Source: Entomortierella parvispora E1425 (taxonomy: Eukaryota; Fungi; Mortierellomycota). From it: 64,000 bases of DNA. Positions 29-63,660 of this stretch are shown here, piece after piece. Numbering within the stretch: position 1 is the stretch's first letter; each line of letters opens with the position of its first letter. The stretch lies in contig BQFW01000015.1 in assembly GCA_020891255.1 (NCBI GenBank), positions 930,001 through 994,000 on the forward strand, written 5' to 3'. The notes under the pieces are model-generated. The model had not been told where the DNA came from. It searched no databases and was given only the letters and a program-made list of their open reading frames with translations. The translations under genes and the position numbers were made by a program.

Positions 29-2283
29 ATGAGATTCCTCTCCATCTCAGCCGCCGTGGCATTGGCCTCGGCAGCCATGGTCGCTGCTGACCTTTCCAAG
101 ATTGTTCGAATTGACCCTGCCAACCAACAATTCATTGATGCACAAGGTCGATCCCGATTCTTCCATGGAACCAACATGGTCAAGAAATCTCCCCCATATC
201 ACGCAGACGTAAACACATTCGTCCCTGGCTATTCTGTTGTTGACAGAGATATCCAGGTCTTGAAGGATCTGAACATTAACAGCGTTCGTCTTGGTAAGAA
301 CTAACTTGGCAGAACCTCCCTCTGAGTATACGTCCAAGGATTGACCTAGAGGTGCTTCGTCCACTGTACCGCACTAGGTGTCCATTGGGCTGGTGTTGAA
401 CCCGTTCGCGGTCAGTACAACCAAACTTACCTTGACATCACCTATGGCATCATCAAGAAACTCCAAGACAACGGTATCTACGCCTTGCTCGATCAGCATC
501 AAGACGTTTGGGCTCCCCAGCTCTGCGGTCACGGCGCACCTCCGGTAAGATGGCCGCATCTCGCGTTTTGTTCTTGAGGACGCGTCTACCCAGTTCTAAC
601 CTCTTACATGTCCTTAATAGTGGTTTGTCAAGCCTGGCTGGGTTGCTCCAGGGCATATGATGCCCGTTCCCCAGAAATCCACTCCTTTCGCGGTGGATGC
701 CAACGGCATCCCATCGGCTGCGGACTGCAACTCCATCGACTGGGCTACTTCCTACCTCAACTATGCGGTTGGCAATGCTTTCGGGCGTCTCTATAACAAC
801 TACGATAACCTAGGAGATGCCTGGGCTTTGTTCTGGAAGACAGTGTCGACCAACTTTCACCAACTGCCAGGTGTTTTGGGATATAACCTCATGAATGGTA
901 ACGGTCCAACGCGTTTTTTTTTTCTGCCATTCTTTGTTCTCACGATTTTTTTTAAAAAATTTCCAATGGGTCACCCCCTAACGCTATTCTCTTTTGTCTT
1001 TTTGTATGCAACAGAGCCCTGGGTGGGTGACCACATGGCGGATCCCACACTCCTAATTCCTGGAAAGGCTGATGGTGTCAACATGGAGCCTCTTTGGAAC
1101 AAGGGTACGGCCCAGATCCGCACCATCGACAACACCACTATCGTCTTTTTTGAAGGATCAACCTACGATATCTTGAACGGATTCAACAATGTTCCGGGTG
1201 GAGATGGCACCCGTGCGGCTCAATCGTATCATTACTACAAACCCCCTCAACTGGGATCGATCGAGACCACAATGAAGAACAGGATCAAGGATGCGACCCG
1301 TCTGAGGTCAGCCAATATGATGACCGAGTTCCAGTTCTGGGGATCGGACAAAGATACTTTGGCTTTGATCTTGGAGGCTACTCAAATGGCGGACACCTAC
1401 TTGCAGTCCTGGCAGGGATGGGCCTACGAGGAGCTGTGGAGTGGTGACAATTACAGTGCTCCGCTAGCAAGACTGTATGCTCGAACGTATGCCGAGGCCA
1501 CGGCCGGAGTGACAAAGACGTTGTACTTCCAAGATACTACCGCCAAGTACTGGGTCTCTTGGGTCGCTAACACCGCTATCACTGCACCTGGTCTTGTCAG
1601 GATTGCTCCCAAGACCTACTACCCCGATGGCATCCGCGTCTTCTTTGTGCCCGCTGGTACTGGTACCTACACTATGGAAAACGAGAACGTTGTCCAGCTC
1701 CACTACACCTCTGCTGCCCAGAAAGGTCAAACCATCCAGGCTAGTGTTCAGCCTTACTTCCCTACAGATATCATCAAGGTCTCCGCTTCCACTGGTTTCT
1801 GCATGGATAACGGCAACGGCTATGTCACTCCTGTAAGTTATTGTTCTTTGTAACCCATCAGTTTCTCGTAGTCCTTTTGGAAGCTCTCTAACAACATGCG
1901 TTTTTTAATGGTCTTTTTGATAGAATAACCCCATCATCATCTGGGGATGCTCTTCATCCGCGAACCAGGTCTGGAAGTTCAAGAACGGCACCATTTCCTT
2001 GGCGTTTGATCCATCCCACAACCACGATACCTTCTGTTTGGATACCCAGCCCATTGCTTCAAAGACTTATTTTAGCGCTGTGCTGAACCCTTGCCAAGCC
2101 GGTTCCCAGACCCAGCAATGGTCTGTGAATGCTGCTGGAAACATTATCAACGCTGCCACCGGTTATTGCATGGACGTCACCGGAAGCACCTACAAAGCGG
2201 GCACCACTGTGATCACTTATCCTTGCTCTGGAAATCCTAACCAGTCCTGGATCTTGCCCCGTGGTGCTTCTGGCACGTGGTAA
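29..2283 (+). CDS. Secreted GH5 endoglycoceramidase-like glycoside hydrolase with C-terminal ricin-B (CBM13) lectin domain, paralog 1
   Basis: Five exons (29-293, 378-544, 621-897, 1015-1832, 1924-2283) with GT-AG introns. Signal peptide MRFLSISAAVALASA; GH5/EGCase motifs RFFHGTN, LLDQHQD, acid/base LMNEPW (spliced), nucleophile MMTEFQFW; QxW ricin repeats (NQVW, TQQW, NQSW). Confidence 0.88.
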
Positions 2284-3919
2284 ACGTCCTGTAGTGAAGA
2301 GATGCCATAACATGCTTCCAGGCAATACATCAAAAATAATAAAACAAACGGCCTTTGGATGGTCTTCAAGAGCAAGTTTGCTTAAGCGGCACCTTCAACA
2401 TTCTGAGAAGTAGAGGGTGGGAAAGCACACGAACGCGATTGGGCGCTGGTGAAAGGGGGCGAGAGCACATGGAACCGTTGAGTAAACAACTCGGAAATTT
2501 CTGCACCGTAAGTCGGGCGCAAATGGCCGAAACAGGGAACTAAACCTTCGGCTCCATGTCCACCCTGCTGACATTGGCGTTGGTGAAAAGTTCATCCAGT
2601 CGACCTGACTAATCGTTTTTGCCCATCAGTGCCCGTCTGCCTCGTCTACAACAAGCAGGGTAAAATAGGAAATCCGGCACCATAGGGGAAGTCGCTTCTT
2701 GCCTCAAACTTTGATCAATGATTTGACCCAAAAAAAAAAAAAAAAAAAAAAAAAAAATAAGACTGTACCATGCTTTTCCTGAACCCATCGAGACTCTAAC
2801 GCTACACTGTCGGGTCCTTCATTCTGGCTTGTTGCTATAGCGAAGCTGAAGAAGCTTGCTCGATCGCAGCTCTTGAGTTAAAACATCTCTCCGGCTATAA
2901 AGTGACCAAGCAGAAATATCCCTTTTGTGTCTGTGTTCCACTGAGATTCAGCATTCAGGATGACGAAGGTGAGAACAAAAGAGAGCACAATTGAGAGCCA
3001 ACGTCTCTAGAGTCCACCAGACCAAAAAAAGTCCAGAGTTCTTCCATGTCCCTCTCCCCCTCTTGTTTACTTTGAACCAGAGAAAGTTGAGAGGGCACGA
3101 TAGCTGCAGAGATCCACATTCCTCAAATAACACTTTAACTTGTGGAGAGCAAGCTACTGACAAAGTCAAGGGCGTGGAGCGAGAGAAGGGAGGAGAGGAC
3201 TTATTGTTTGCGTAAAAACATAAGAGATGATCCAGGTAATCAGCCTCGCTTTGGGCGTTTTCCCAGCCTCTTTGGAATTATGAGGCAGCAATAGCAAACA
3301 GCCAATCTCAGGGGTCGTGGGAGCACGACGAGCAACCCGCCCTGCAAAACACCCGAGAGACGCGATTGATAAATTTCAGGGCCCAACCGAAGAAAAGTTT
3401 GTGTTCGTCCAACGCGAAATTCGGAAATACCATGTTGCTCTTGCGAGCTTGGACCCTTCGGCTGCCCTCTGAACTCGCAGTTTACACAAGGCTGGGGATG
3501 TTTATGGCAGTCCAGACTGAGTTCTCCCTCATCCTCCTGGAGTACAAACAATTACTCCTGCAGCTGTCTTGTTGACAAGAGGTCAGGGCCGTTAGAAACG
3601 ACGTCTGTTTTCCTGCGGCGCTTTGTTTACAGAAAGTGAGGAATGAGTTGACATGCGCGTGAACGTTAAGGAGCAAAAAGTAGACACAAAGCTGCATGGA
3701 GCAACTGGCAGACAAAAGAGTCCAAAGTGAAGAAACCACTCGGAACTGTGAACCTTCCTGTTCAATGTAGACATGGTCATGTCCATGCTCCACGATTTTT
3801 GCTTATATAGACCCATCAACCGCCCCTCGCTTTTTTTTTCCTTTCCTCTTTTTGGCTCTTCGTTCTCTTTTACTTTTCCACTCCAAGAGTCACCCATCCT
3901 TTTCCTCATTCCCTCCTCG

Positions 3920-6241
3920 ATGAGATTTCTCTCCATCTCAGCCGCGGTATTGGCCTCGGTAGCCTTGGTCACTGCCGACCTGTCCAAGATTGTTCGAGTT
4001 GACCCTGCCAGCCAACAATTCATTGATGCCAACGGTCGTTCTCGATTCTTCCATGGAACCAACATGATCAAGAAAGTACCTCCATATCATGCGGACATCA
4101 ATCAATTCGACCCTGGTTACTCCCTTGTTGACAGGGATATCCAGGTCTTGAAGGATCTGAACATCAACAGCATTCGTCTTGGTAAGAATCTACTTGATGT
4201 AGCTTTTTTTTCCGAGTGCAAGATCTGTAACTGACACAGGACATACTTTTGTCGACTGTGTTTAGGTGTTCAATGGACTGGTGTTGAACCAGTTCGTGGT
4301 CAATACAACCAAACTTACCTCGATATCACCGGTACCATCATCCAGAGGCTGCAAGACAACGGTATCTACGCCTTGCTCGATCAGCATCAAGATGTTTGGG
4401 CTCCTCAGCTTTGCGGTGAGGGCGCACCTGACGTACGAAACCCAGCATCTCATGTTTTGTTCCCAAGGATGTGTCCACTACTTAGTTCTAACCTTCTTAC
4501 GTGTTCCTAATAGTGGTTCGTCCAACCCGGTTGGGTCATTCCTAGCGATATGATGCCCGTCCCTCAGCAGTCTACTCCTTTTGCTGTGGATGCCAATGGC
4601 ATGCCTTCTGCAGCGGACTGCGACTCGATCGATTGGTCAACCTCTTACCTCGACTACGCAGTTGGCAATGCATTCGGACGACTTTATAACAACTACGACA
4701 GCCTGGGTGATGCCTGGGCTCTATACTGGAAGACAGTTGTGACCAATTACCACATGCTGCCAGGTGTTTTGGGATATGATCTCATGAACGGTAACACTCC
4801 AACGCGTGTTTGTTCTTTTGTCTTTTCTTTTTTTTTTTTTTTTTGTTCTCACGCTCTTCTTAGATTCTTCAAGTTTTCTTAATTTTTTGTGTGGTCTATT
4901 GTCACACCCTTTCAACTGAGCAGCTCCTTAACGCTATTCTCTCCTACTCTTGCCATCTACAATAGAGCCCTGGGTCGGCGACCATATGGCGGATCCTACA
5001 CTTCTGATTCCTGGAAGGGCTGACAGTGTCAACCTAGAGCCTCTCTGGAATAAGGGTACGGCCCAGATCCGTACCGTCGACAACACCACCATTGTTTTCT
5101 TTGAAGGTGTGACATTCGATATCTTGAGTGGGTTCGAAAATGTGCCCGGTGGAGATGGTACCCATACGGCTCAATCGTACCATTACTACAAGCCCCCTCA
5201 ACTGGGATCGGTCGAGACCACGATCCAGAACAGGATCACGGATGCGACACGTTTGAAGACTACTGGCATGATGACCGAGTTCCAATTCTGGGGATCAGAT
5301 AACGCGACCTTGGCTTTGATCTTGGAGGCTGCTCAAATGGCAGACACATACATGCAGTCCTGGCAAGGATGGTCCTACGAGGAGCTGTGGAGTGGTGACA
5401 ATTACAGTTTACCACTTGCTCAGATTTACGCTCGCACATATGCCGAGGCCACGGCCGGAGTGGCAAAGACGTTGTACTTCCAAGATACTACCGCCAAGTA
5501 CTGGGTCTCCTGGATCGCCGACACTTCCATCACTGCACCTGGTCTGATCAGGATTGCTCCTAATACCTACTACCCCGACGGCATCCGCGTCTTCTTTGTG
5601 CCCGCTGGTACTGGTACCTACACTATGGAAAACGAGAACGTCGTCCAGCTCCACTACACGTCTACAGCCGTGACTGGTCAAACCATCCAGGCTAGTGTAC
5701 AGCCTTATTTCCCTACAGATATCATCAAGAGCTCCGCCTCTACTGGTTTCTGCATGGACAATAGCAATGCTTTTGTCAACCCTGTAGGTTTTTATCTGGC
5801 GACTCTATGTTTTTTTATTTTTTTTTGGAAACTAACATCAGCCGTGTCATCTTTTTTTTTTTTCTTTTGACACTCCACCAGAACAACCCCATCATCATCT
5901 GGGGATGCTCTTCATCCGCGAACCAGGTCTGGAAGTTCAAGAATGGCACCATCTCTTTGGCGTTTGATCCATCCCACAACCACGATACCTTCTGTTTGGA
6001 TACCCAGCCCATTGCTTCAAAGACTTATTTTAGCGCTGTGTTGAACCCTTGCCAAGCTGGTTCCCAGACCCAGCAATGGTCTGTGAATGCTGCCGGAAAC
6101 ATTATCAACGCTTCCAATGGCTACTGCTTGGACATCACTGGAAGCACTTACAAGGCCGGTACCGATGTGATCACTTACCCTTGTTCAGGAAATCCTAACC
6201 AGGAATGGATCCTCCCCCGTGGCGCCTCTGGCACGTGGTAA
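3920..6241 (+). CDS. Secreted GH5 endoglycoceramidase-like hydrolase + ricin-B lectin, paralog 2
   Basis: Same five-exon structure (3920-4181, 4266-4432, 4514-4790, 4966-5783, 5882-6241); same motifs, including CGEGAPDW, NEPW and TEFQFW. Confidence 0.88.
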
Positions 6242-6319
6242 ATAGTGCTATCTGAGAGATACAATAAAAATCTGCTAAGGATATCAACTGTGAGGTCCAG
6301 TCCAGGGTCTTTCCTTAAA

Positions 6320-7246
6320 CAGTTCTGGGGAGTAGATGCACAATACTTGGAGAACATCCGTAACACCGTCCAATTGGCAGACAAATATTTGGTCTCCTGG
6401 CTAGGATAGGCCTACGAAAATCTTTGGCATGACGACGATTAAATACCGCCCTGAATTGGCACAACGGTAAGGCCACAGCTGGTGTGGCACAAACAATGTA
6501 CTTCCAGGATACCACCGCAAGTACTGGGTCTCCTGGGTCTCCAACACTGCCATCACCGCCCCTGGTCTGATCAAAATTGCTCCCAAGTTTTAATACCCCG
6601 ATGGCATTCGCGTCTTTTTTTCATCCCGCTGGTACTGGTACCTACACCATGGAGAACGACAATGTGGTCCAGCTCCACTACACGTCTGCAGCCCGAAACG
6701 GTCAAACCATTCTGGCCAGTGTCCAGCATTACTTCCCAACATATGTCGTCAAGGTCGCTGCTTCCACTGGTTCAGCAACAGTGGCTATGTCACCCCTTCA
6801 ATTTTTTTTCTTCTCGTCAACTCGGTGAATTTTTCGTGGTCATTTGGAACACCATGAACAGCGTGTACTTTTTTTCATGCTTTTCACTAGAACAACCCTA
6901 GCGTCATCTGGGATTCTCAACCTGGAATCAAGTATGGAAGTTCGAGGACGGCGCCGTCTCTTTGGCGTTTGATCCATCTTACAATCACGACACCTGCTAC
7001 ATGAATACACAGCCCTGTCCTGGCAACCCTTAAAGTAATGTTGTGTTGAATCCTTGCCAAGCAGGATCTCAGACCTAGCAATGGTTTGTGAATGCTGCAG
7101 GAAACATCATCAATGCCTTTAATGGCGGGTGTCTGGACGTCACTGAAAGCAGATTCCGCGATGGAACACCCTTGGTCACTTACCCTTGCAATAGAAGCTC
7201 TAACCAGGTTTGGATCCTTCCCCGTGGCGCCCCTGGCAGGTGGTAA
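6320..7246 (+). pseudogene. 5'-truncated, frameshifted third GH5/ricin paralog
   Basis: Starts ~80 nt after the paralog 2 stop with QFWGVDAQYL..ADKYLVSWLG*AYENLW (TAG at 6407 where paralogs have Trp). Further stops and indels; clear DNA similarity to paralogs through the ricin exon ending ...ILPRGAPGRW*. Confidence 0.85.
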
Positions 7247-7330
7247 TGGGAGAATACCACAATATTCTGTGCTTCAACAGGTGTGTGTTTTGTTACGATA
7301 TGCAAAAAAAACCCGCAACGATTTGCTTTA

Positions 7331-9213
7331 TTACATCTTAGGTCCACCTTTCTTCACCTTGCCTGAGTATTGCCTCTCCCTCTTCTCTGAGACCCAACGC
7401 TCATGCTTTCTCCAAAAGGCCAGGGTCCGGTCGTCCAACCTCTCACATAATCCACGCTCCACTGTGGCCTGCTCAGAGAAGACCAAAGCTTCGCCTCGGC
7501 CTTTGACTCCGATATCGCTAGGTAAAAGTCCGCTCATAAACCCCACACCAGTGGAAGAGTTATCCCTATGGCAACGGGTGAGCCCATATTGGCGGTTAGT
7601 CTCGCCCCACGCGAACAAAATCCAGATCTCCATCATTCGACGCGACAATTCTTTCTCGGCGGGATCCTTGAACAGAGCCAAAGCGGCGTCGGAGCCAAAC
7701 ACAAACGGGATCTCAATCGCATGATGAGCCCCGATAAAGATTCCCATATCCTCCATGAGCTTCAACGGACGATCAAAGTGGAACCGAACTAGGTCCAATG
7801 CTGGACTCTCCTTCTTCATCAGAGCTAGACTCGTTGCATGTGTTGGGTAAAGAAAAACTGAATCCGAGATAACCCTGGACGAAATCTGACGAGCCTCCTT
7901 ATCTGTTTTGGGGATCCCATAGATCTGTTCGAATTCCCGACGACTGACTTCATCTGGTGGACAGTTGCGAGCAAAGAACTTATCCCATCTTTTCATTGAT
8001 TTGGCGCCCAAGAACGGAACAAACGTTCGACCTTCATCCCGACAATCGCCTAACATGACAGCCTCGATTCCTTGATCGTAGGCGCGAGGGTCGTGAAGTT
8101 GTATGCGAGGATCCTGATGGATTAGGATGTCATCGATCGTAGGGGTGAACATGCCTACGCGTCCAAAGTCGCCAGCCTTGACCAACTCTGTAGCATCAAT
8201 AGCCCTCAATAGCTCCAGCTTCTCGGCTCCTGTCAATGGCTGGTCAGCGGCGCTCTGCAGACCAAAGTGTCGGCAAAGATGATCAAAATACCGTTGTCCT
8301 TCAATTTCAGCTCTTCCTGCAGCCATCGTGGTAGCGGCTCCGGATTGCAAGATGACTTTTTGGAACAGACCATGATTTTCAGGTATCAAGAGATGATAGC
8401 TGATAGACACTGCTCCTGCGGATTCTCCAAAGGCTGTGACATCTTGAGAGCTTCCTCCAAAAACATCAATATGGTCCCGAACCCACTCCAAAGCCATTTT
8501 TTGATCCATAAGACCCCAATTGCCAACACTGCCTCGAGACCGTGCCAGATTTTGAGGGAGAGTGGCATCGTGCTTCAGTTCTGCAGAGGACATAAAACCA
8601 AGGTAGTTGAGTCGATAATTGATGGTGACTAAAATCACGGGTCGTCCAATACGAATCGAATGCGCCACAAAGTTGGATCCATCATAGAGAGGAAGGGCGT
8701 TGCTTCCGTGAACAAAGCCTCCACCGTGGATCCAGACCATGACGGGAATCAAGGCGTTCGCTTTGGAGAGATGGTCTAGGGGTGCAAAGATGTTCAGATT
8801 TAGGCAGTGCTCCTCCGAATAGGTGATGACTTCCTGAGTTGCTCCAGCATTGTTATCGTCTCGGTTCATAGCCGCCATGGGGTCTGCTTGAGCTGGCTGT
8901 GGGCAAGCAGGTCTAATATAATAAAGATCAATAGAAGGAGACAGATACTGAGTACTGGCGATCTTGCGTGATAGTTTGTCCAACTTTTGCACATAGACCT
9001 GTTGGTCAACCTGCAAGCTGTCTCTTACCCCAGAACAGTGCAATCGCGAACATTGCTCCATGCAGCTGCTTTGAAGGCTGGACGCCAGCGCTCAGGTACG
9101 GTTGCATAAGGAACGTTCAAGAACTTTGCAACTGAAGGTTGAGTCTTAACCTGGAGACCTTGAACGGCGCCACATCCAGGGATCGTTATTTGAGGGTCGC
9201 GAGACACAGGCAT
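7331..9213 (-). CDS. Type-B carboxylesterase/lipase (alpha/beta hydrolase)
   Basis: Exon 1 9213-9029 (MPVSRDP..FLNVPYA..PERW), intron 9028-8913, exon 2 to 7331. Motifs SEEHCLNLNIF, WIHGGGF, GESAG nucleophile, DEG acid, AHHAIEIP histidine. Confidence 0.92.
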
Positions 9214-9465
9214 CTGAGCTGAAAAGTCAAAGGTGGACTGGTTTTGCCTGAAACAATGGAGTGTGTATTGCCAGCAAAAGGAAGAAATGGGGAAATGGAA
9301 AATGTTTGAAAAATTAGAAAAGCAAGAAAGAAAAAAAGGGTGGTACAAAGCCAATTCGTTCACTTTACATGATGACCGTGGACCGAGCCCTTGTTTTTGT
9401 AGAGCAGCAACACATAGGCCACCATCGTTCATGGCGCCACTAGAAAGGCTTGCTTTATTCTTGCT

Positions 9466-9717
9466 TCATTTCTTTGACCCCTGCTGCTTCTTGGCCAAAT
9501 GCTCCAGGTCCCGGGCTCGACTATCCTGGACCAGCTTCCCAATTTGCGTCATGGTCAACCCTCCTGGTCCCTTGATTTTATCGGGGTCCAGCTCGGTCTT
9601 TGTGCGACTGCTGCTCTGTTGCTTCTCTTGTGAGTTTGACGATGAGGGGGTCCTTGACACTCTGGGCGGAGTGACGCCTCTCCCAACGCCACTACTGTAA
9701 TTCCGAGTTGCCTGCAT
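9466..9717 (-). CDS. Small basic hypothetical protein, possibly mitochondrial (R/S/T-rich N-terminus); true start may lie upstream
   Basis: 83-aa ORF with protein-like composition; no family recognised. Confidence 0.3.
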   Translation of the reverse strand: MQATRNYSSGVGRGVTPPRVSRTPSSSNSQEKQQSSSRTKTELDPDKIKGPGGLTMTQIGKLVQDSRARDLEHLAKKQQGSKK

Positions 9718-10173
9718 GCATGCTCGTGTGAAACTGTTGATGGTCGAAAAAAAACTCCGAATGTTAAAGCCATGAATCGAAATCTCAGCGTCCCTCCCAC
9801 AATGATTGCCTCTCTTTACTTGATGGTTCCAAGTGCTTTTGTAAACATCATGTTGAATAAATGTGATCCGGCAAACGAAAGAGGGATGTGTCTTTGCAGG
9901 CTCAAGTTTTAGTTAGGCAAGCCAAAGGGAACGACCCCGTCGTGTGGCTTAGAACATGAGTCTCCCTCTTGCTTTGCGAAGGCGCGCGCGTTCTTTTCGT
10001 GCCAAGGCAGGCGCGACCAACAAAAGCACAGTTCCAAGCCCTCGAGTGGCATAGGCAGCTCTTTCATCTTCAGATTGTGCTGGAGAGATTCACATTCCAT
10101 TGGGTATTTCGTCCTACTTTGGACTAGTAAGGGTGCACCCTTCCCGGATATGGCTGTCGATCATAGGACCCCA

Positions 10174-56688: not shown

Positions 56689-56748
56689 TTATCTAAGACT
56701 CTGATCCTCCTTGCAACACGCTACCGGCACCACTGGTACACGCTACCG

Positions 56749-57334
56749 TTTTTTTTTTTTTTTTTTTTTTGCACATTTTATTTGCTATGTCGAGCCAAAG
56801 AAGTGAAGTGCGAGACCAAACTATCTACAACCTGAGCAAAGCCGCGTGGTCCAGACGACAAATGACCCCGGATCCCCGCGCAACAAATGCCACGACTCGT
56901 CGCCGTGTTATAAAGAAGAGTAAAATGTTACAAAAAATGGATCTTCCCCATCTTTTCTAATGTCGATAAGTGAACCTGGCCACGCACACAAGCCAGTAGT
57001 CGCTGGTCAGCCAGCGTAGGATCGTCTTGGGCACCTGGGCAGAGGCCTTTGTGGTGGTCAGTGTAAGCCTTGCCGCATTGGCAGGTGCCTGGCGCAAGGA
57101 TCGCACCAGAGGCATTGTTCCACGGCTGCCCCGACGGGGCTGCTTGTTTTTTCATCTTGGGGCGGATGCCTTGTGACTTCTCCCAGGCAATGGTGACTTC
57201 GCACCGTGTCTTCCAGATACGTGCAAGGGCGTCTCTGTCCAGGCGGCGGATAAACTGGTGAGCAACTGCGACCACAACCGAGCGGGGTCCTTTAATAACC
57301 GGTGTCCAGGCTGTGATCAGCGCCGAGTGTAACA
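56749..57334 (-). mobile_element. Short 5'-truncated non-LTR retrotransposon copy (end of ORF, 3' UTR, 22-nt poly(A))
   Basis: PolyT 56749-56770; 3' UTR nearly identical to that of the long copy; ORF end ..CQCGKAYTDHHKGLCP..KIHFL*. Confidence 0.92.
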
Positions 57335-57349
57335 GTGACCCCGGATCCC

Positions 57350-57351
<2 letters not shown>
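57335..57351. repeat. Target-site duplication, left copy: GTGACCCCGGATCCCGG
   Basis: Directly abuts the long copy's polyT; identical to 62587-62603. Confidence 0.9.
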
Positions 57352-57388
<37 letters not shown>

Positions 57389-57545
57389 AACATTTTATTT
57401 GCTATGTCGAGCCAAAGAAGTGAAGTGCTAGACCAAACTATCTACAACCTGAGCAAAGCCGCGTGGTCCAGACGAACAAAAGACCCCGGATCCCCGCGCA
57501 ACAAATGCCACGGCTCGTCACCGTGTAATAAAGAAGAGTAAAATG

Positions 57546-58364
57546 TTACAAAAAATGGATCTTCCCCATCTTTTCTAATGTCGATAAGTGAACCTGGCCA
57601 CGTACACAAGCCAGTAAGCGCTGGTCAGCCAGCGTGGGATTGTCTTGGGCACCAGGGCAGAGGCCTTGATGGTGGTCGGTGTTAGGCTTTCCGCATTGGC
57701 AAGTGTCCGGTGGTAAGATCGTACCAGAGGCATTGTTCCACGGTTGCCCAGTCTGGGCTTGCTTCTTCATCTTGGGGCGGATACCTTGTGTCTTCTCCCA
57801 TGCAATAGTCACTTCGCAGCGCGTCTTCCAGAGCCGAGCTAAGGCATCCCTGTCCAGACGACGAATAAACTGATGAGCAACGGCGACCACGACAGAGCGA
57901 GGGCCTTTAATAATTGGCCTCCAGGCCTCGATCAGAGCCGAATGGAGCAGTCCTTGGTAAGCAGTGACGACAGAACAAGCCGATGCCAACGGAGCTTTGA
58001 GCTGTCCCTGCTCAGGGGGTCGGAAGGCTGACAAGTCATGAAAAGCAGAGTAAAGTGATGCCCACAAGAGCGTGTCCGATGGTTGGTACCATTGGAGTCG
58101 TTTCGGGGCTGCAACGTTGGGTGTGCGGGCTTGTTGCTTGCGATGTCTGGTGTCAGCGTCCTCATTGGCTTTCCTGATAGCGGCCCTGCCCCACTTTGGT
58201 ATTGAAGCCACCGCATCCGCCCAAATCAGTTGTTGTTGATTGTATGAGTTTGGACAAGTCCACACATGGTCGTTGTCCTCTGGGGCTGCACGACACAGGC
58301 AACAGAGTGCGTCTGCGTACATATCTGGGTGTCGCGCCTGCATGACTGTGAGTGTCGGAAGCAT
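57546..58364 (-). CDS. Retrotransposon C-terminal region (CCLC..EDNDHVWTC zinc knuckle; CQC..H..C)
   Basis: 272-aa ORF continuing the polyprotein after a 1-nt shift. Confidence 0.8.
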   Translation of the reverse strand: MLPTLTVMQARHPDMYADALCCLCRAAPEDNDHVWTCPNSYNQQQLIWADAVASIPKWGRAAIRKANEDADTRHRKQQARTPNVAAPKRLQWYQPSDTLLWASLYSAFHDLSAFRPPEQGQLKAPLASACSVVTAYQGLLHSALIEAWRPIIKGPRSVVVAVAHQFIRRLDRDALARLWKTRCEVTIAWEKTQGIRPKMKKQAQTGQPWNNASGTILPPDTCQCGKPNTDHHQGLCPGAQDNPTLADQRLLACVRGQVHLSTLEKMGKIHFL

Positions 58365-61300
58365 CCCATGGAGTTTTTTTGATGTGCTGTGTGCGTCGAG
58401 ACGTGTCCCCGCGGCTGCTGAAGAAAGTATGGACTGGCCGTTTGTCGTGGATGATCGAAAGAGCAGATCGCCACTCCACGTCGGTCAAGTCACTAATAGA
58501 TCGCTTGACACGTTTCTGCGCTGTCCACTGTTGATGTCGACGGATAGTAGTCTGCTGTTTAAGAAACTGCCGCAAATCTGACTCCAGTTGTTGACCGTGG
58601 CACGAGGCTGTGAAGGTAATGTCGTTTTGAGTGCTGAAGTCCGCATGCCATGGTGTCGTGTCCTGCTCGACAGCGTTGGTAGCAATCGCGTCAGCCATAT
58701 CGTTTCCCTTGTCACCACTGTGTCCTCGAACCCATTGCACCGCTGTCCGGCCCTCTCGTTCTGCCACCACTGTCGCCAAAACTGCCCAGAGGCATGCATG
58801 TGTTGCCCGTTGTCGCTTTCGTGGAAGTGTTTTGTGCCGGTCCAGGACTAAGTCGTGATATTGAGTAACGACACCCTCATTGTCGAGGCGGACCAAAATG
58901 TCTTGCCCTGGAGGCATGGCGACGATCGCAGCAATAAGTCCCATAAGCTCGGCTTTGCCAGAAGAGGCTTGTCCATCTGTGCGGCCAGGGATAGAGTAAG
59001 AGGTGTCCGTGGAAAAGTCAGCCACGCCAAAGGCCATAGCGCACTCTTCAGTACCTGCTCGGACCATCGAGCCGTCCGAGTATAGGACTCGCTGGTCTTG
59101 TGTGATTGGTGATTGACGAAGCTGGTGTAAGAGTTCGGCTTGGGTTCGGGGCATCCACAGCGGGCCTACTTTGACAAGGTGGTTTTGCTGTGGGAGAGGT
59201 AAAGTAGGAGGTGAAATGTGAAGAGTATGAACAACACTTGGATCAATGGTGACCGTAAGTGGATGTTGGTGCCGTCCAATACGTTCTCTGTTGGTGATCA
59301 CATCCTGGTCCCGCTCCTCCGCAGCCCAGGAGATGTACTCGGCTCTGATAAGCTGCCTTTCTTCTGCCGCCTCCAGGTGTTGTTGGTGTTTGTTGTCTGC
59401 GTAGTCGTGTGCGTCCTGGATTTTGTGAGCAAGTCTATCTGCAATGTGTCCGAGCTGGATCTGAGCACGAGCCTGCAACACTCGGAGCCCCCGCTTGGCA
59501 ATACTCTCGGCCGCTTTGATGGCCTCGGCTAACCTTTGCGGGTTCTTGGCTAGTTGGCGGCGGTAACGGGCAGCATGGACCTGAAGTTCTTGACGCCTCT
59601 TATCCACTGCAGACTGCAACTCTTGAATGATCTTGGTCCGGGCAGGAATAGTGCCCACGTCGGCTGCATTGAGCCGTGAGGTCAGCTCGTCGTCAAGCCA
59701 GCGTGATTCAGCTCGCAACAACGCGTCTGCCTCTGGTGGCAGTCGCGCCAAGTACGTCGTAGGCGGGGTGTCAACGACAAAGTTGTTGTTAGCATCTATA
59801 CTAGCAGAGACTGAACGCGAGACATTGGTTAAGCCGACAGTAGTTGCGGTGTCAGGAAAGAGACGGCGGAGGGTAGGGGCTGCAACAAAGTAAGGTGAAA
59901 TAGAAGAAAACTGAGAAGACAAAGATTGCGAAGATAACGGTGCTGATAAGGATGGAGAAGAAGGTGATGGTGAACAGATAGGTGACGATGGAACAATAAC
60001 AGGGAGGGGTGAAGGGGGTGAAAAGGAAGGGTCGCTTACTCCCGAAGACAGTGACGAAGAAGATAGAGAAGAAGAAGGTGACGATGAAGAAGGTGCAAAT
60101 GAAGAAGAAGAAGAAGAAGATGAAGAAGAAGAAGAAGAAGAAGAAGGAGACAAAAAAGAAGAAGGAAGGGAGCGCGACCTGGGCTCGTATGGTCCCTTTT
60201 TCTCTTTTGGCTCTTTTTTTGTTGTCTGGTCTTTTTGGCTGTGAGGGTGTGCAGACCGTGCAGTAGGTGGGTTGTGCCTTGCCTTTTGTGGGATGGGGTG
60301 ACGTGAGCCTTTTTGTTGTTGTTTGGGTTCTTTTGCCTCTTTTTGTTGTTTCTTTTTGTCCTGCACGGTCTTGTTTGCATCTTGTCCACACTCCCCACTC
60401 TTGTTCCGCACCACCGTTCCCACGCGCGCCTCGCTCCAGTCCTCTTCCTCTTGAACCTGCTCGCGCGCTGCCTCTTTTCCTTTTGGGCTCCGTGGTCCTC
60501 TTGGTATCTCATCGTCCTGCTCCTCTCCCGACGACTCTTGATCCGTGAACGCCATATCCATCTCCCAGATCACCTCTTCTACAACCTCTGCGCCGTTGCC
60601 GTCGCTGGGGCTGTGGTCCGCACTCTGTTCTAATGAATACAATTGGGTAAGTGTGTCTTTGTTTTTGTCTGGCTTTGGTCGTTGTTCTTCATCTTTCCGC
60701 TTGAACGAATGAGTCACTGCCGTAGCAGCTGTTGTAGACACTGCCTTTTGAAGTTCGTTTTTGTTTATACTCACTCGCTCAAGATCACCTGTAGTTGTTG
60801 TGGAGGCCTCCTCTGCCCGGAGCAGAGCACGACGCAGGATGCGTGGATCAATCAACGGCTCTGAATCGGTATCGGACAACTCGTACACGCTGGATGTCGC
60901 GGACAGAGTTGTGGCGGGTGCGTTGTCCTCGTTCGTTTCGGCAGAATCAGAGTCGCTGGCATCAGGAGGTGTGCAGAGATGGACAGTGAGAGCAGCGTAC
61001 CATGCACGCATCCCGCCAGACAGGCGGTGTCGGTCCTTGAGATCGCGCCAAGATGCAAGGTGGGATCCATCCTCAGTAACAACGTCGTGCAGGAATACAA
61101 TGCCGTCGCGGAAGAGTTGTGGGCCGATTTTGAAGTATGCTTGGGCAGGGATAAGTGTCGACAGCAGTGTAGATGGCGGGTACTGCGGGAGTTGGACAGG
61201 AGCGATTGTAATGGCCCGGTCAACCAAGAGCCCACAAACCTTGGCGAGAAAATGGTGCTTCTTGACCAGACATGAGCGGTCCGGGGCTTCGAGCGGGTGT

Positions 61301-62577
61301 TGTACAATAGCAGCAGCAGCTTGCAGAGATGAGAAACGAGCAGCCATGACTCTGCCCACCAGACCCTTGTCTTGTATGCGAAGGAGGACTGTCGAAATTT
61401 GCTCCTCAGCCTGCACGTCACCAAAGTGGCGGAGGCCATACAATCGACGGTGGAAGAGGATACTATTGGGCGTGCCAGCCGGAAGACCCACTTTGTGCCG
61501 AATCATAGTCGTATACCGCGAAACTATCGAGGTAACTTCAGAAGGTGAGAGGATTGTGACTGAAAGACGATACAAGATCCGTGGAATTAACACATTATTA
61601 ACCAAGTAAATGGCCTGTTTGTCTGTGACAGCGCGGCGCGAGAGGACGGCACACAAGGATGAAACTTCCTCCATGACCATTCGCTTAGTCGACTTCGGGA
61701 TCCCGTCTTCAGTGAACCACACCCCAAGGGAGCGGACGGCTGTGGTGGAGTTGTGGGCTTGTACAGTTGCGTCGCCAATAGTGATACTGCGGTCGTCTGT
61801 GGAGGCGTTGATGACAATGAGTTCAGTCTTTTTGGGATTAATCTCGATGGCGTTCAAGGTGAAGAATTCTACCGCCACATCCACTGTTTGTTGCATGTTG
61901 GCCTGGGATGGGGCGTAAAAGTTGGTGTCGTCCACGAAGGCGCCTGCTGACACCTGAACTGCAGTGTCCGAGGGATCCTCCAAAAGCCTGGGAAGCCGAC
62001 GCTGGTCTACCAACGAATTGTGTCGCGTTATCACATAACCGAGTCCCGCCTCCATCACTGCATCTAAAAGGACGTCGTAGCAAATAAGCCAGAGGATAGG
62101 ACATTCAACACCACCCTGATCAAGGCCGCAGCGAGGGTGATATGGTGCCGTCATTCCAAAGGCCGTAATAACTTGGTTGGTTTTCTCGGTTGCAATGGTC
62201 GTGCAGAGCTGGATGAACATTGGATGGATCCGAAGACGTCTCAGGCTACGTTCAAGGGTCTGGCCCGGTCCGCAGGTTACAGAGTCAAAACAGCGGCGGA
62301 TGTCCTGGAAGAGTATCCATGCTTCCTTATTGTGCTCCCGAGCATCTTCCATCACCGCATTGAGGATGTGAATTGGATCCTTAGTGGTAGTGCCCGGAAG
62401 CACTGAGAAATTCGCGCCACGCAGGACCCTATGTGTAGTTAGAACGACGACCATGCGGTCAACCAGAATGGAGAACAGGATTTTGCGCCCATGTTCCAGT
62501 AATGTCAAGGGACGGACGTCTGTCAAGCGACCTGTCCAGCAAGGCCCTTTGGGGATGCAGTACAGAAGGCCTTTCAT
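58162..62577 (-). CDS. Retrotransposon polyprotein: RT, long disordered insertion, RNase H
   Basis: 1471-aa ORF; shifts frame near 58374-58380 into the zinc-knuckle ORF. Confidence 0.9.
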   Translation of the reverse strand: MKGLLYCIPKGPCWTGRLTDVRPLTLLEHGRKILFSILVDRMVVVLTTHRVLRGANFSVLPGTTTKDPIHILNAVMEDAREHNKEAWILFQDIRRCFDSVTCGPGQTLERSLRRLRIHPMFIQLCTTIATEKTNQVITAFGMTAPYHPRCGLDQGGVECPILWLICYDVLLDAVMEAGLGYVITRHNSLVDQRRLPRLLEDPSDTAVQVSAGAFVDDTNFYAPSQANMQQTVDVAVEFFTLNAIEINPKKTELIVINASTDDRSITIGDATVQAHNSTTAVRSLGVWFTEDGIPKSTKRMVMEEVSSLCAVLSRRAVTDKQAIYLVNNVLIPRILYRLSVTILSPSEVTSIVSRYTTMIRHKVGLPAGTPNSILFHRRLYGLRHFGDVQAEEQISTVLLRIQDKGLVGRVMAARFSSLQAAAAIVQHPLEAPDRSCLVKKHHFLAKVCGLLVDRAITIAPVQLPQYPPSTLLSTLIPAQAYFKIGPQLFRDGIVFLHDVVTEDGSHLASWRDLKDRHRLSGGMRAWYAALTVHLCTPPDASDSDSAETNEDNAPATTLSATSSVYELSDTDSEPLIDPRILRRALLRAEEASTTTTGDLERVSINKNELQKAVSTTAATAVTHSFKRKDEEQRPKPDKNKDTLTQLYSLEQSADHSPSDGNGAEVVEEVIWEMDMAFTDQESSGEEQDDEIPRGPRSPKGKEAAREQVQEEEDWSEARVGTVVRNKSGECGQDANKTVQDKKKQQKEAKEPKQQQKGSRHPIPQKARHNPPTARSAHPHSQKDQTTKKEPKEKKGPYEPRSRSLPSSFLSPSSSSSSSSSSSSSSSFAPSSSSPSSSLSSSSLSSGVSDPSFSPPSPLPVIVPSSPICSPSPSSPSLSAPLSSQSLSSQFSSISPYFVAAPTLRRLFPDTATTVGLTNVSRSVSASIDANNNFVVDTPPTTYLARLPPEADALLRAESRWLDDELTSRLNAADVGTIPARTKIIQELQSAVDKRRQELQVHAARYRRQLAKNPQRLAEAIKAAESIAKRGLRVLQARAQIQLGHIADRLAHKIQDAHDYADNKHQQHLEAAEERQLIRAEYISWAAEERDQDVITNRERIGRHQHPLTVTIDPSVVHTLHISPPTLPLPQQNHLVKVGPLWMPRTQAELLHQLRQSPITQDQRVLYSDGSMVRAGTEECAMAFGVADFSTDTSYSIPGRTDGQASSGKAELMGLIAAIVAMPPGQDILVRLDNEGVVTQYHDLVLDRHKTLPRKRQRATHACLWAVLATVVAEREGRTAVQWVRGHSGDKGNDMADAIATNAVEQDTTPWHADFSTQNDITFTASCHGQQLESDLRQFLKQQTTIRRHQQWTAQKRVKRSISDLTDVEWRSALSIIHDKRPVHTFFSSRGDTSRRTQHIKKTPWDASDTHSHAGATPRYVRRRTLLPVSCSPRGQRPCVDLSKLIQSTTTDLGGCGGFNTKVGQGRYQESQ

Positions 62578-62586
62578 CCAAGATGC

Positions 62587-62603
62587 GTGACCCCGGATCC
62601 CGG
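62587..62603. repeat. Target-site duplication, right copy: GTGACCCCGGATCCCGG
   Basis: Abuts the truncated 5' end of the long copy. Confidence 0.9.
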
Positions 62604-62640
62604 TGCCAGTGGTGCCGCTACTGTGTCCTCTTCACAGGAA

Positions 62641-62650
62641 GTCACGTGAT
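62641..62650. promoter_or_regulatory. E-box/Cbf1-type palindrome GTCACGTGAT upstream of tRNA-Gly
   Basis: Same 10-mer occurs upstream of tRNA-Val; function unproven. Confidence 0.4.
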
Positions 62651-62699
62651 ATAATGGGATCTTAAATGTTTGGAATAAAGTTATTTCCATCTTGATCAA

Positions 62700-62770
62700 G
62701 AAAGTGTAGTATATGGGTATCATTCCGGCCTTCCAAGCCTGAGAACCGGGTTCGAGTCCCGGCACTTTCA
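62700..62770 (+). tRNA. tRNA-Gly(TCC)
   Basis: Acceptor GAAAGTG/CACTTTC, anticodon arm CCGGC-CTTCCAA-GCCTG, T-arm CCGGG-TTCGAGT-CCCGG; T-runs follow at 62773-62793. Confidence 0.9.
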
Positions 62771-62908
62771 TATTTTAGTACCTTTTCTTTTTTGTCACTA
62801 CGTTGAGTCTAACCGCCGAATCACACATGAAGCATGAGGCTGCCGGCATTGCCCTCATGTGCTGCAACAGCAATCTTACGGTAGGGCTGACAAGGCTGAT
62901 GGAAAATG

Positions 62909-63175
62909 TTTTTTTTTTTTTGGGTTTATCTATTTGAGGCCTTGATCGAAGCGCAGTGTAACACTCCTTGGTAGGCAGTGACGACCGACTGAGCCGATGC
63001 CAACGGGGCTGGTGCCAACGGGCTGGTGATCTGTCCCCTCACAGGAGGTCAGGTCGTTGGCGAGTCATGGAAGGCAGAGTACAATGATGTCCACAAAGCC
63101 GTGTCCGATGGCTGGTACCATGGAGGCGGTTTCGGGCGGCAACTTCGGGTTTGCGGGCTTGTTGCGAACGAGGTG
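62909..63175 (-). mobile_element. Decayed internal fragment of the same non-LTR family, preceded by a 13-nt polyT
   Basis: 62934-63175 aligns by eye with ~57915-58140 (e.g. gtgtccgatgg(c/t)tggtaccat, gcgggcttgttg). Confidence 0.78.
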
Positions 63176-63182
63176 GAGCTCA

Positions 63183-63270
63183 CTATCTGACAACCCAGGT
63201 TTCCATGCAATTTTCCAAAGTGTGACTGGTGGGTTGTCAAACAAAACGAACAACCTGGGTTGTCAAATAG
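63183..63270. repeat. 88-bp element with 17-bp inverted ends (MITE-like/hairpin)
   Basis: ctatctgacaacccagg ... cctgggttgtcaaatag (1 mismatch). Confidence 0.65.
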
Positions 63271-63278
63271 ATAAATCC

Positions 63279-63445
63279 TTTTTTTTTTGCTATGTCGAGC
63301 CAAAGAAGGATCCCTGCACACTAAACATTTTACTCTTCTTTATTACACGGCTACGAGTCGGGGCATTTGCTGTTGATAAATGAACCCGGCACAAATACCG
63401 TCTGTCACCTTGGGATCGTCTTCGGCGCCAGGACAAAGGCCGGAG
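63279..63445 (-). mobile_element. Decayed 3' end of the same non-LTR family with an internal inversion
   Basis: PolyT + gctatgtcgagccaaagaag identical to the 3' UTR; 63324-63372 is the reverse complement of UTR sequence; ORF-end similarity to ~63441. Confidence 0.8.
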
Positions 63446-63477
63446 TGAAGTTTGCCTGTTTAACGTACAAAAATGAT

Positions 63478-63517
63478 GACACGTGATATTCACGTACGAT
63501 TATAGTAGTCACGTGAT
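63478..63517. promoter_or_regulatory. Two CACGTG E-boxes (gacacgtgat, gtcacgtgat) upstream of tRNA-Val
   Basis: At 63478-63487 and 63508-63517. Confidence 0.4.
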
Positions 63518-63587
63518 CATAGCTAAATATCAATAAATTCCTGAACCAATCAGCATCCGAGACCTGGCCAATAGGCTTCGTTTCTAG

Positions 63588-63660
63588 GCTTTAGTAGTGT
63601 AGTGGTTATCACATCTGTCTCACTAACAGAAGGTCCCAGGTTCGAAACCTGGCTAAAGCA
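63588..63660 (+). tRNA. tRNA-Val(CAC)
   Basis: Acceptor GCTTTAG/CTAAAGC, D-arm with AGTGG, anticodon arm TCTGT-CTCACTA-ACAGA, T-arm CCAGG-TTCGAAA-CCTGG. Confidence 0.88.

Follow-up and report, generated by a model that had tools for sequence, protein, structure and literature searches.

Several long interspersed nuclear elements (LINEs), namely R1, R2 and those of the Tx1 group, have restricted targets linked to RNA genes, cleaving a defined sequence that lies within the gene or repeat itself. In fungi, the targeting of tRNA genes was previously known only for long terminal repeat (LTR) retrotransposons. Among non-LTR elements, position-specific targeting of tRNA genes is listed by a 2018 review for dictyostelid amoebae only (PMC5911963). 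Here we analyze a LINE of the soil fungus Entomortierella parvispora that lies in a 64-kb stretch of the assembly (contig C15, positions 930001 to 994000; C-numbers denote contigs of this assembly), hereafter the window, within which positions are counted from the first letter. We propose, with a probability of about 80%, that this LINE inserts by target-primed reverse transcription upstream of genes that RNA polymerase III (Pol III) transcribes, and that its insertions are placed by position and not by DNA sequence. A preliminary description of the window knew of no fungal LINE of such habit, and neither our literature searches, which were incomplete in coverage, nor the same review (PMC5911963) gave a fungal non-LTR element that inserts upstream of tRNA genes.

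According to ARAGORN, exactly two tRNA genes are present in the window, and both are plus-strand genes. A BLAST comparison with the full-length copy of the element, which lies on C2, recovers four LINE pieces, all on the minus strand. This agrees with the preliminary description, which had reported four minus-strand pieces of one LINE with reverse transcriptase (RT) and RNase H upstream of plus-strand tRNA genes and had considered the rest of the window free of copies; indeed, BLAST gave no further match in the 64 kb or in the next 10 kb. The pieces, delimited by repeat analysis together with BLAST, and their surroundings are:

56749 to 57336, minus strand: copy A, belonging to the A subfamily, a 3′ fragment of 588 bp that shares 88.8% identity with the full-length copy and has the 3′ end and poly(A) tail
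57335 to 57351: left target-site duplication of copy B, 17 bp, GTGACCCCGGATCCCGG
57352 to 62586, minus strand: copy B, 5.2 kb, 5′-truncated, 99.35% identical to the full-length C2 copy
62587 to 62603: right target-site duplication of copy B, 17 bp, at −113 to −97 relative to tRNA-Gly
62604 to 62699: spacer between the insertion point and tRNA-Gly, holding the motif TCACGTGAT with CACGTG at 62643 to 62648
62700 to 62770, plus strand: tRNA-Gly(UCC) (ARAGORN), target gene of copies A and B
62909 to 63165, minus strand: fragment C, an old internal LINE piece, of which 62937 to 63165 is 73% identical to the C-terminal region of open reading frame (ORF) 2 and is preceded by a T-run at 62909 to 62921
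63281 to 63441, minus strand: fragment D, an old 3′-terminal LINE piece that matches the other copies with 96% identity over its terminal 28 nt
63588 to 63660, plus strand: tRNA-Val(CAC) (ARAGORN), target gene of fragments C and D

Copy B has its 5′ end exactly 113 bp from tRNA-Gly(UCC), the distance at which the preliminary description had let the stacked copies end. Its truncation point falls inside ORF2, immediately ahead of RT, and its open frame (58162 to 62577, minus strand, 1471 amino acids) matches RVT_1 at residues 8 to 286 (E 5.6e-15) and RNase_H at residues 1162 to 1303 (E 2.6e-12); a frameshift near 58375 to 58436 removes the C-terminal ~275 amino acids, including the CCHC motifs. 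On the plus strand, the poly(A) tails of the element appear as T-runs, 22 to 35 nt long, at 56749 to 56770 for copy A and at 57352 to 57386 for copy B. Copy A directly abuts, with its 5′ end, the left target-site duplication of copy B. Before copy B arrived, this 5′ end occupied the position relative to tRNA-Gly, −114, at which that of copy B is found today. Because the 5′ end of copy A was originally at the coordinate now held by that of copy B, copy B inserted between copy A and tRNA-Gly. Repeated insertion at one position thus accounts for the tandem arrays to which the preliminary description had drawn attention. It had also placed two older fragments ~140 bp before tRNA-Val, which holds for fragment D, whose end is 146 bp from the gene; fragment C is an internal piece and not a 3′ end. 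Taken together, the earlier observation of LINE pieces beside tRNA genes is confirmed, and its reading as a Pol III-gene-targeting LINE in an early-diverging fungus is supported.

Three further features of these pieces were observed. Fragment D has 49 nt of the 3′ untranslated region (UTR), at 63324 to 63372, in inverted orientation relative to all other copies, between colinear flanks. A 24-nt inverted repeat (83% match; 56716 to 56739 and 62603 to 62626) flanks the entire array of copies A and B. Finally, 14 nt of the target site of copy B (62588 to 62601), TGACCCCGGATCCC, are identical to a stretch of the element's 3′ UTR at 56863 to 56876.

The full-length copy that the preliminary description had hoped to recover was found on C2. 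It is the only one in the genome and the sole copy with the 5′ half, measures 9.8 kb and is flanked by a 19-bp target-site duplication. Its ORF1 encodes 748 amino acids with a match to RRM_1 (23.3 bits, cut-off 20.7), a CCHC-like knuckle near residues 347 to 361 (counted along the open frame of 769 residues) and, judged by eye, a coiled-coil-like C-terminal region. ORF2, which overlaps ORF1 by 8 nt, matches Exo_endo_phos at residues 85 to 318 (E 2.5e-10) and RVT_1 from residue 696, and encodes, in this order, an apurinic/apyrimidinic (APE) endonuclease, RT, a low-complexity linker of ~560 amino acids that is probably a coiled coil, RNase H and two CCHC motifs. The unusual length of the element is a consequence of this linker (residues ~1230 to 1790; ~59700 to 60900 in the window), which is acidic, basic, serine-rich and partly coiled-coil-like; it is a candidate, and for now purely conjectural, tethering region. 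Copies of the element begin at 209, 4302, 4792 and 9417 of a 10100-nt reference stretch on C2, in which the full-length element occupies ~207 to 10009, and their target-site duplications vary in length (19, 16 and 17 bp). Domain and repeat analyses found neither LTRs (terminal direct repeats) nor an integrase domain in the element. With an APE endonuclease followed by RT, with poly(A) tails, 5′ truncation and duplications of variable length, and with nucleic-acid-binding domains in ORF1, it is an autonomous APE-type non-LTR retrotransposon, i.e. a LINE. An RT search of the genome yielded three copies with identical RT as well as more distant families. A PDB sequence search for clade placement gave a single weak match for ORF2, to R2, none to L1 ORF2p, and none for ORF1.

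The position of insertion can be best illustrated by three young copies, which are 99.3 to 100% identical, each with its own target-site duplication and each oriented opposite to its Pol III gene:

C2, full-length copy: 19-bp duplication, 108 bp to a tRNA-like locus with A and B boxes, head-to-head
C15 at 738 kb, 5.7-kb copy: 16-bp duplication, 109 bp to tRNA-Val(AAC), head-to-head
Window, copy B: 17-bp duplication, 113 bp to tRNA-Gly(UCC), head-to-head

The three duplications, like the nick contexts and flanks, are unrelated in sequence, and no constant target sequence is found. Read in terms of target-primed reverse transcription, the priming nick, on the tRNA-sense strand, falls at about −89 to −97 and the second nick at about −108 to −114, i.e. 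16 to 19 bp farther upstream. The tRNA-like locus beside the full-length copy has perfect A and B boxes. It belongs to a small family of ~92 nt (C2:3491203-3491286) with about six more matches in the genome (C2:3469000, C2:3004168, C2:3179246, C3:580593, C12:398323 and C5:549743), which may be a tRNA-derived Pol III gene or the head of a short interspersed nuclear element (SINE).

Genome-wide, the 3′ end of the element gives at least 45 matches at ~37 loci, most of which were assessed from coordinates alone. For comparison, a tRNA catalogue was compiled from an Rfam search, in which 63 of ~1193 candidates were scored, and from three patterns combining A box and B box, which gave 99, 105 and 55 matches as opposed to 12, 5 and 44 for reversed-pattern controls; a bare B-box pattern proved too noisy (at least 100 matches) and was discarded. 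After random-looking and duplicate matches had been dropped, the catalogue comprised ~183 nuclear tRNA genes; the genome paper counts 192 tRNA genes (PMC8759367). At least 15 of the ~37 loci have a catalogued tRNA gene at the element's 5′ side, on the opposite strand and within 3.2 kb, where ~0.3 loci are expected by chance (binomial tail p ~1e-22). Where 5′ ends could be measured from coordinates, they lie 105, 105, 110, 114 and 125 bp from the tRNA gene. The tRNA stands in a different arrangement at one locus only; at all other tRNA-associated loci the orientation is opposite. The targets include isoacceptors for Gly, Val (two), Arg, Asn and Leu, Thr and one of Ser/Leu type, and stacks of two to four fragments are present at several tRNA genes, for example at C9:250 kb and C1:2879 kb. 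The same geometry is seen for a copy on C16 that is 3.15 kb from a variant 5S gene, the one possible 5S case.

The 5S rRNA genes of this genome occur in short tandem arrays with a period of ~1.4 kb, mostly near contig ends (C5:1897018-1898542, C11:8329-9882, C16:121949-123495 and C18:55693-57245), with diverged single copies at C16:100404 and C5:1873555. Eight near-identical segments of 514 bp are 74% identical to the LINE 3′ UTR (C11:855432, C4:2822564, C4:677162, C12:86289, C8:428472, C2:1604099, C1:1810610 and C9:862517). Two of them are situated 352 to 354 bp downstream of a tRNA gene in the same orientation and two others ~3.83 kb from one. The segments resemble a portion of some larger repeat likewise tied to tRNA genes.

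Several points weigh against the reading proposed here. For ~20 of the ~37 loci, no catalogued tRNA gene lies on the expected side within 10 kb. This number includes ten short fragments (C2:3598783, C10:1796566, C1:779928, C13:1356472, C8:2337059, C12:754621, C5:1186446, C5:1799446, C5:1349205 and C8:2349600), in which a target would be expected ~110 bp from the 5′ end. Thus, the genomic mapping suggested in the preliminary description bears out the expected geometry for at least 15 of the ~37 loci and leaves its strictness unproven. The catalogue lacks the tRNA families for Ala, Gln(CUG), Lys(UUU) and Pro(UGG), among others, and the tRNA-less loci may be untargeted, rearranged or beside uncatalogued Pol III genes. 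In addition, neither ARAGORN nor Rfam at a permissive threshold calls the tRNA-like locus next to the full-length copy a tRNA, and the locus yields no clean cloverleaf when folded; it is a candidate Pol III gene by virtue of its A and B boxes. The other members of its family are likewise not called as tRNAs by the two programs and form no cloverleaf. No target-site duplication is recognizable for copy A. Furthermore, an empty site was not obtained from the contigs of four sequencing runs with the same species label, which hold only relatives of 80 to 95% identity, none of them bridging the insertion.

More distant relatives share the habit. In E. parvispora itself, the full-length copy of a second family (52% RT identity) has its 5′ end 151 bp from tRNA-Gly(GCC), head-to-head, and two of its three other fragments are upstream of tRNA genes. 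This full-length copy is interrupted, precisely where its ORF2 ends, by an LTR retrotransposon (C2:2893798-2901454, LTRs ~7.49 kb apart) that has at least four near-identical copies in the genome, including those at C1:1377382, C6:56773 and C7:619472. Beyond this species, searches that included one with an ORF2 N-terminal alignment as query identified metagenomic contigs with proteins that are 34 to 61% identical. All four of the contigs with enough unstacked flank end in a tRNA gene on the opposite strand: Lys at 120 bp, a partial Ser at 146 bp, Glu at ~150 bp and a partial Cys at ~154 bp. In a fifth contig (L038), whose flank of 142 bp falls just short of this range, neither ARAGORN nor Rfam detected a tRNA; the flank contains a B-box-like word, oriented like the element, and is treated as uninformative. 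In three more contigs, a poly(A) and ~25 to 60 nt immediately precede the next 5′ end, a pattern that marks stacked insertions. An exact search of the metagenome contigs for the 20-nt 3′ terminus gave no match. In an ORF2 tree rooted on Geosiphon elements, tRNA-associated families are found in both subclades, which indicates that the habit is old in the lineage.

The same lineage also provides an internal control. A third family nests within it and is represented in the fetched regions by five copies that are 66 to 100% identical in amino acid sequence over the aligned segments, most of them at least 94%. No tRNA gene is present in the 20-kb region of any of the five, and hence LINE copies in E. 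parvispora are not tRNA-adjacent by default. This family is ~8.6 kb long (C1:510148-518732, with more copies on C11, C13, C5 and at C15:289 kb). An 18-bp duplication built of GGCAATGGT repeats flanks the C1 copy, which hints at a different target preference, possibly for microsatellites.

How might such placement arise? The copies show an element that inserts via target-primed reverse transcription, on a set strand and at a set distance from Pol III genes of diverse types that have no target sequence in common. We suggest that the target is picked by its position relative to a Pol III-transcribed gene, which leaves the element head-to-head with the tRNA gene and its 5′ end 105 to 125 bp away. 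Repeated hits at one coordinate displace older copies outward and build head-to-tail arrays with the youngest copy nearest the tRNA gene, as copies B and A exemplify. The ruler might be the Pol III pre-initiation complex (TFIIIC/TFIIIB) assembled on a gene with A and B boxes and contacted by a protein of the element. We infer such tethering by analogy with TRE5-A of Dictyostelium, whose ORF1 protein binds TFIIIB (PMC5911963). In the TRE5 family, targeting also requires that the B box be intact. Since the spacing in the fungus is roughly double the TRE5 value, contact or geometry must be of another kind; a protein of the element may touch the complex differently, or cleavage may take place where the first nucleosome upstream has its edge.

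The latter consideration leads to the alternative that survives best, namely that targeting uses local chromatin (a nucleosome-free region or the first positioned upstream nucleosome) or a factor bound to CACGTG, and involves no direct contact with TFIIIB or TFIIIC. Such a cue would fit the nick sites, which at about −90 to −114 are well past the stretch that TFIIIB usually covers and past the point, at about −48, where TRE5 inserts. It would be tempting to assign the role of ruler to the palindromic motif TCACGTGA(T/C), which is found 50 to 110 bp upstream of all four E. parvispora nuclear tRNA genes that could be read and which might serve the tRNA genes of Mortierellaceae as an upstream promoter element. 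Of the 11 CACGTG sites in the window, three are upstream of tRNA genes, one before tRNA-Gly (62643 to 62648) and two before tRNA-Val (63480 to 63485 and 63510 to 63515), and further occurrences of the motif are at L016:9057-9062 and at ~5680 to 5686 of L018 (L-numbers denote retrieved stretches). The tRNA-Cys gene of a metagenomic relative has TCATGTGAT twice. However, the distance from the insertion point to CACGTG varies (39 to 57 bp) while that to the tRNA gene is near constant, and the motif is absent at two targets, the tRNA-like locus beside the full-length copy and the metagenomic tRNA-Lys gene. The motif is therefore unlikely to be the ruler. The present data do not separate a nucleosome cue from a protein tether, and we regard this alternative as a whole as improbable.

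A lower probability still, that of an outside chance, is given to random integration followed by retention beside tRNA genes as harmless spots, in which case the association would not be a property of the element itself. This idea draws on the gene density of the genome and on the fragment loci without a catalogued tRNA gene, which make up about half of the total. Neither the fixed strand nor the window of 105 to 125 bp can be produced in this way, and it leaves unexplained the identical junctions of copies A and B, both at −114, and the location of all three young copies at 108 to 113 bp. Moreover, the LINEs of the third family, which share the genome, are not near tRNA genes. That the endonuclease reads a specific DNA sequence upstream of tRNA genes, as in R1 and the Tx1 group, or that units of tRNA gene and LINE were spread by segmental duplication, is hardly credible despite the 14-nt identity between the target site of copy B and the element's own 3′ UTR, given unrelated duplications and nick contexts, targets in at least eight tRNA families plus the tRNA-like locus, flanks, truncation points and duplications that differ from one to the next, and metagenomic relatives beside yet other tRNA genes.

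Returning to targeting by position, we consider it somewhat probable that position-specific integration upstream of Pol III genes evolved in an old Mortierellaceae LINE lineage, with an origin separate from that of the dictyostelid TRE and NLTR elements and with a ruler of its own (first nick at ~90 to 97 bp, about twice the TRE5 value), and that this is the first fungal LINE of the kind. ORF2 proteins across the two subclades of the lineage are only ~35% identical, and E. parvispora still holds one intact 9.8-kb copy along with two recent offspring copies. If this interpretation is correct, the fungus offers a culturable system in which to study how the Pol III complex, or a nucleosome flanking it, is recognized by an element that inserts through target priming, and the lineage would be the third to have solved, independently, the problem of finding a safe harbour in a compact genome. 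It would also be a comparison case for the tethering of an endonuclease-plus-RT machine near Pol III genes, and, as a natural instance of site-directed insertion by target-primed reverse transcription, it would be relevant to the design of gene delivery. On a practical note, arrays of LINE fragments beside tRNA genes in Mortierellaceae assemblies are to be expected and need not be taken for assembly artefacts.

Among the known systems, the closest in habit is TRE5-A (DRE) of Dictyostelium, a member of the L1 clade. Like the fungal LINE, it is of APE type with two ORFs and poly(A), is often 5′-truncated, and inserts at a set distance upstream of tRNA genes of any identity and in opposite orientation (PMC5911963). 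TRE5 elements also hit other Pol III genes such as 5S, to which the tRNA-like locus and possibly the 5S variant would correspond in the fungus (PMC5911963). The match with TRE5-A geometry claimed in the preliminary description thus stands for orientation and has to be given up for distance, which is ~110 bp as compared with ~48 bp; given as ranges, the values are ~105 to 125 bp for the fungal LINE and 44 to 54 bp for TRE5. The domain sets differ as well: ORF2 of TRE5 carries a zinc finger but lacks RNase H, whereas that of the fungal LINE has RNase H and the ~560-amino-acid linker, and the fungal ORF1 combines an RRM with a CCHC knuckle. The hosts are an amoebozoan and a fungus, respectively, and no sequence relationship to TRE5-A appeared among the best protein matches. 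With both distance and domain set differing, the fungal LINE is not a member of TRE5 but an analogue.

NLTR-A of D. purpureum and NLTR-B of P. pallidum resemble the fungal LINE, by description only, in that they share the order APE, RT and RNase H and insert upstream of tRNA genes (PMC5006619, PMC5911963). The ORFs of NLTR-A overlap by 13 bp, compared with 8 in the fungal LINE (PMC5006619, PMC5911963). Their distances differ, with NLTR-A inserting 2 to 6 bp and NLTR-B 39 to 64 bp upstream, and the fungal LINE and its relatives 105 to 154 bp.

Ty1 and Ty3 of yeast are, like the present element, fungal and find a safe harbour in the DNA upstream of tRNA genes, and Ty1 inserts in nucleosomal DNA within an upstream window that includes about −110. 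Unlike it, they carry LTRs and an integrase, which contacts AC40 (Ty1) or TFIIIB (Ty3), do not use target-primed reverse transcription, and have no comparable fixed orientation, no poly(A) and no 5′ truncation. From R1, R2 and the Tx1 group, finally, the LINE of E. parvispora is set apart in that the gene beside which it inserts stays intact, and in that its target sequence varies from one insertion to another.

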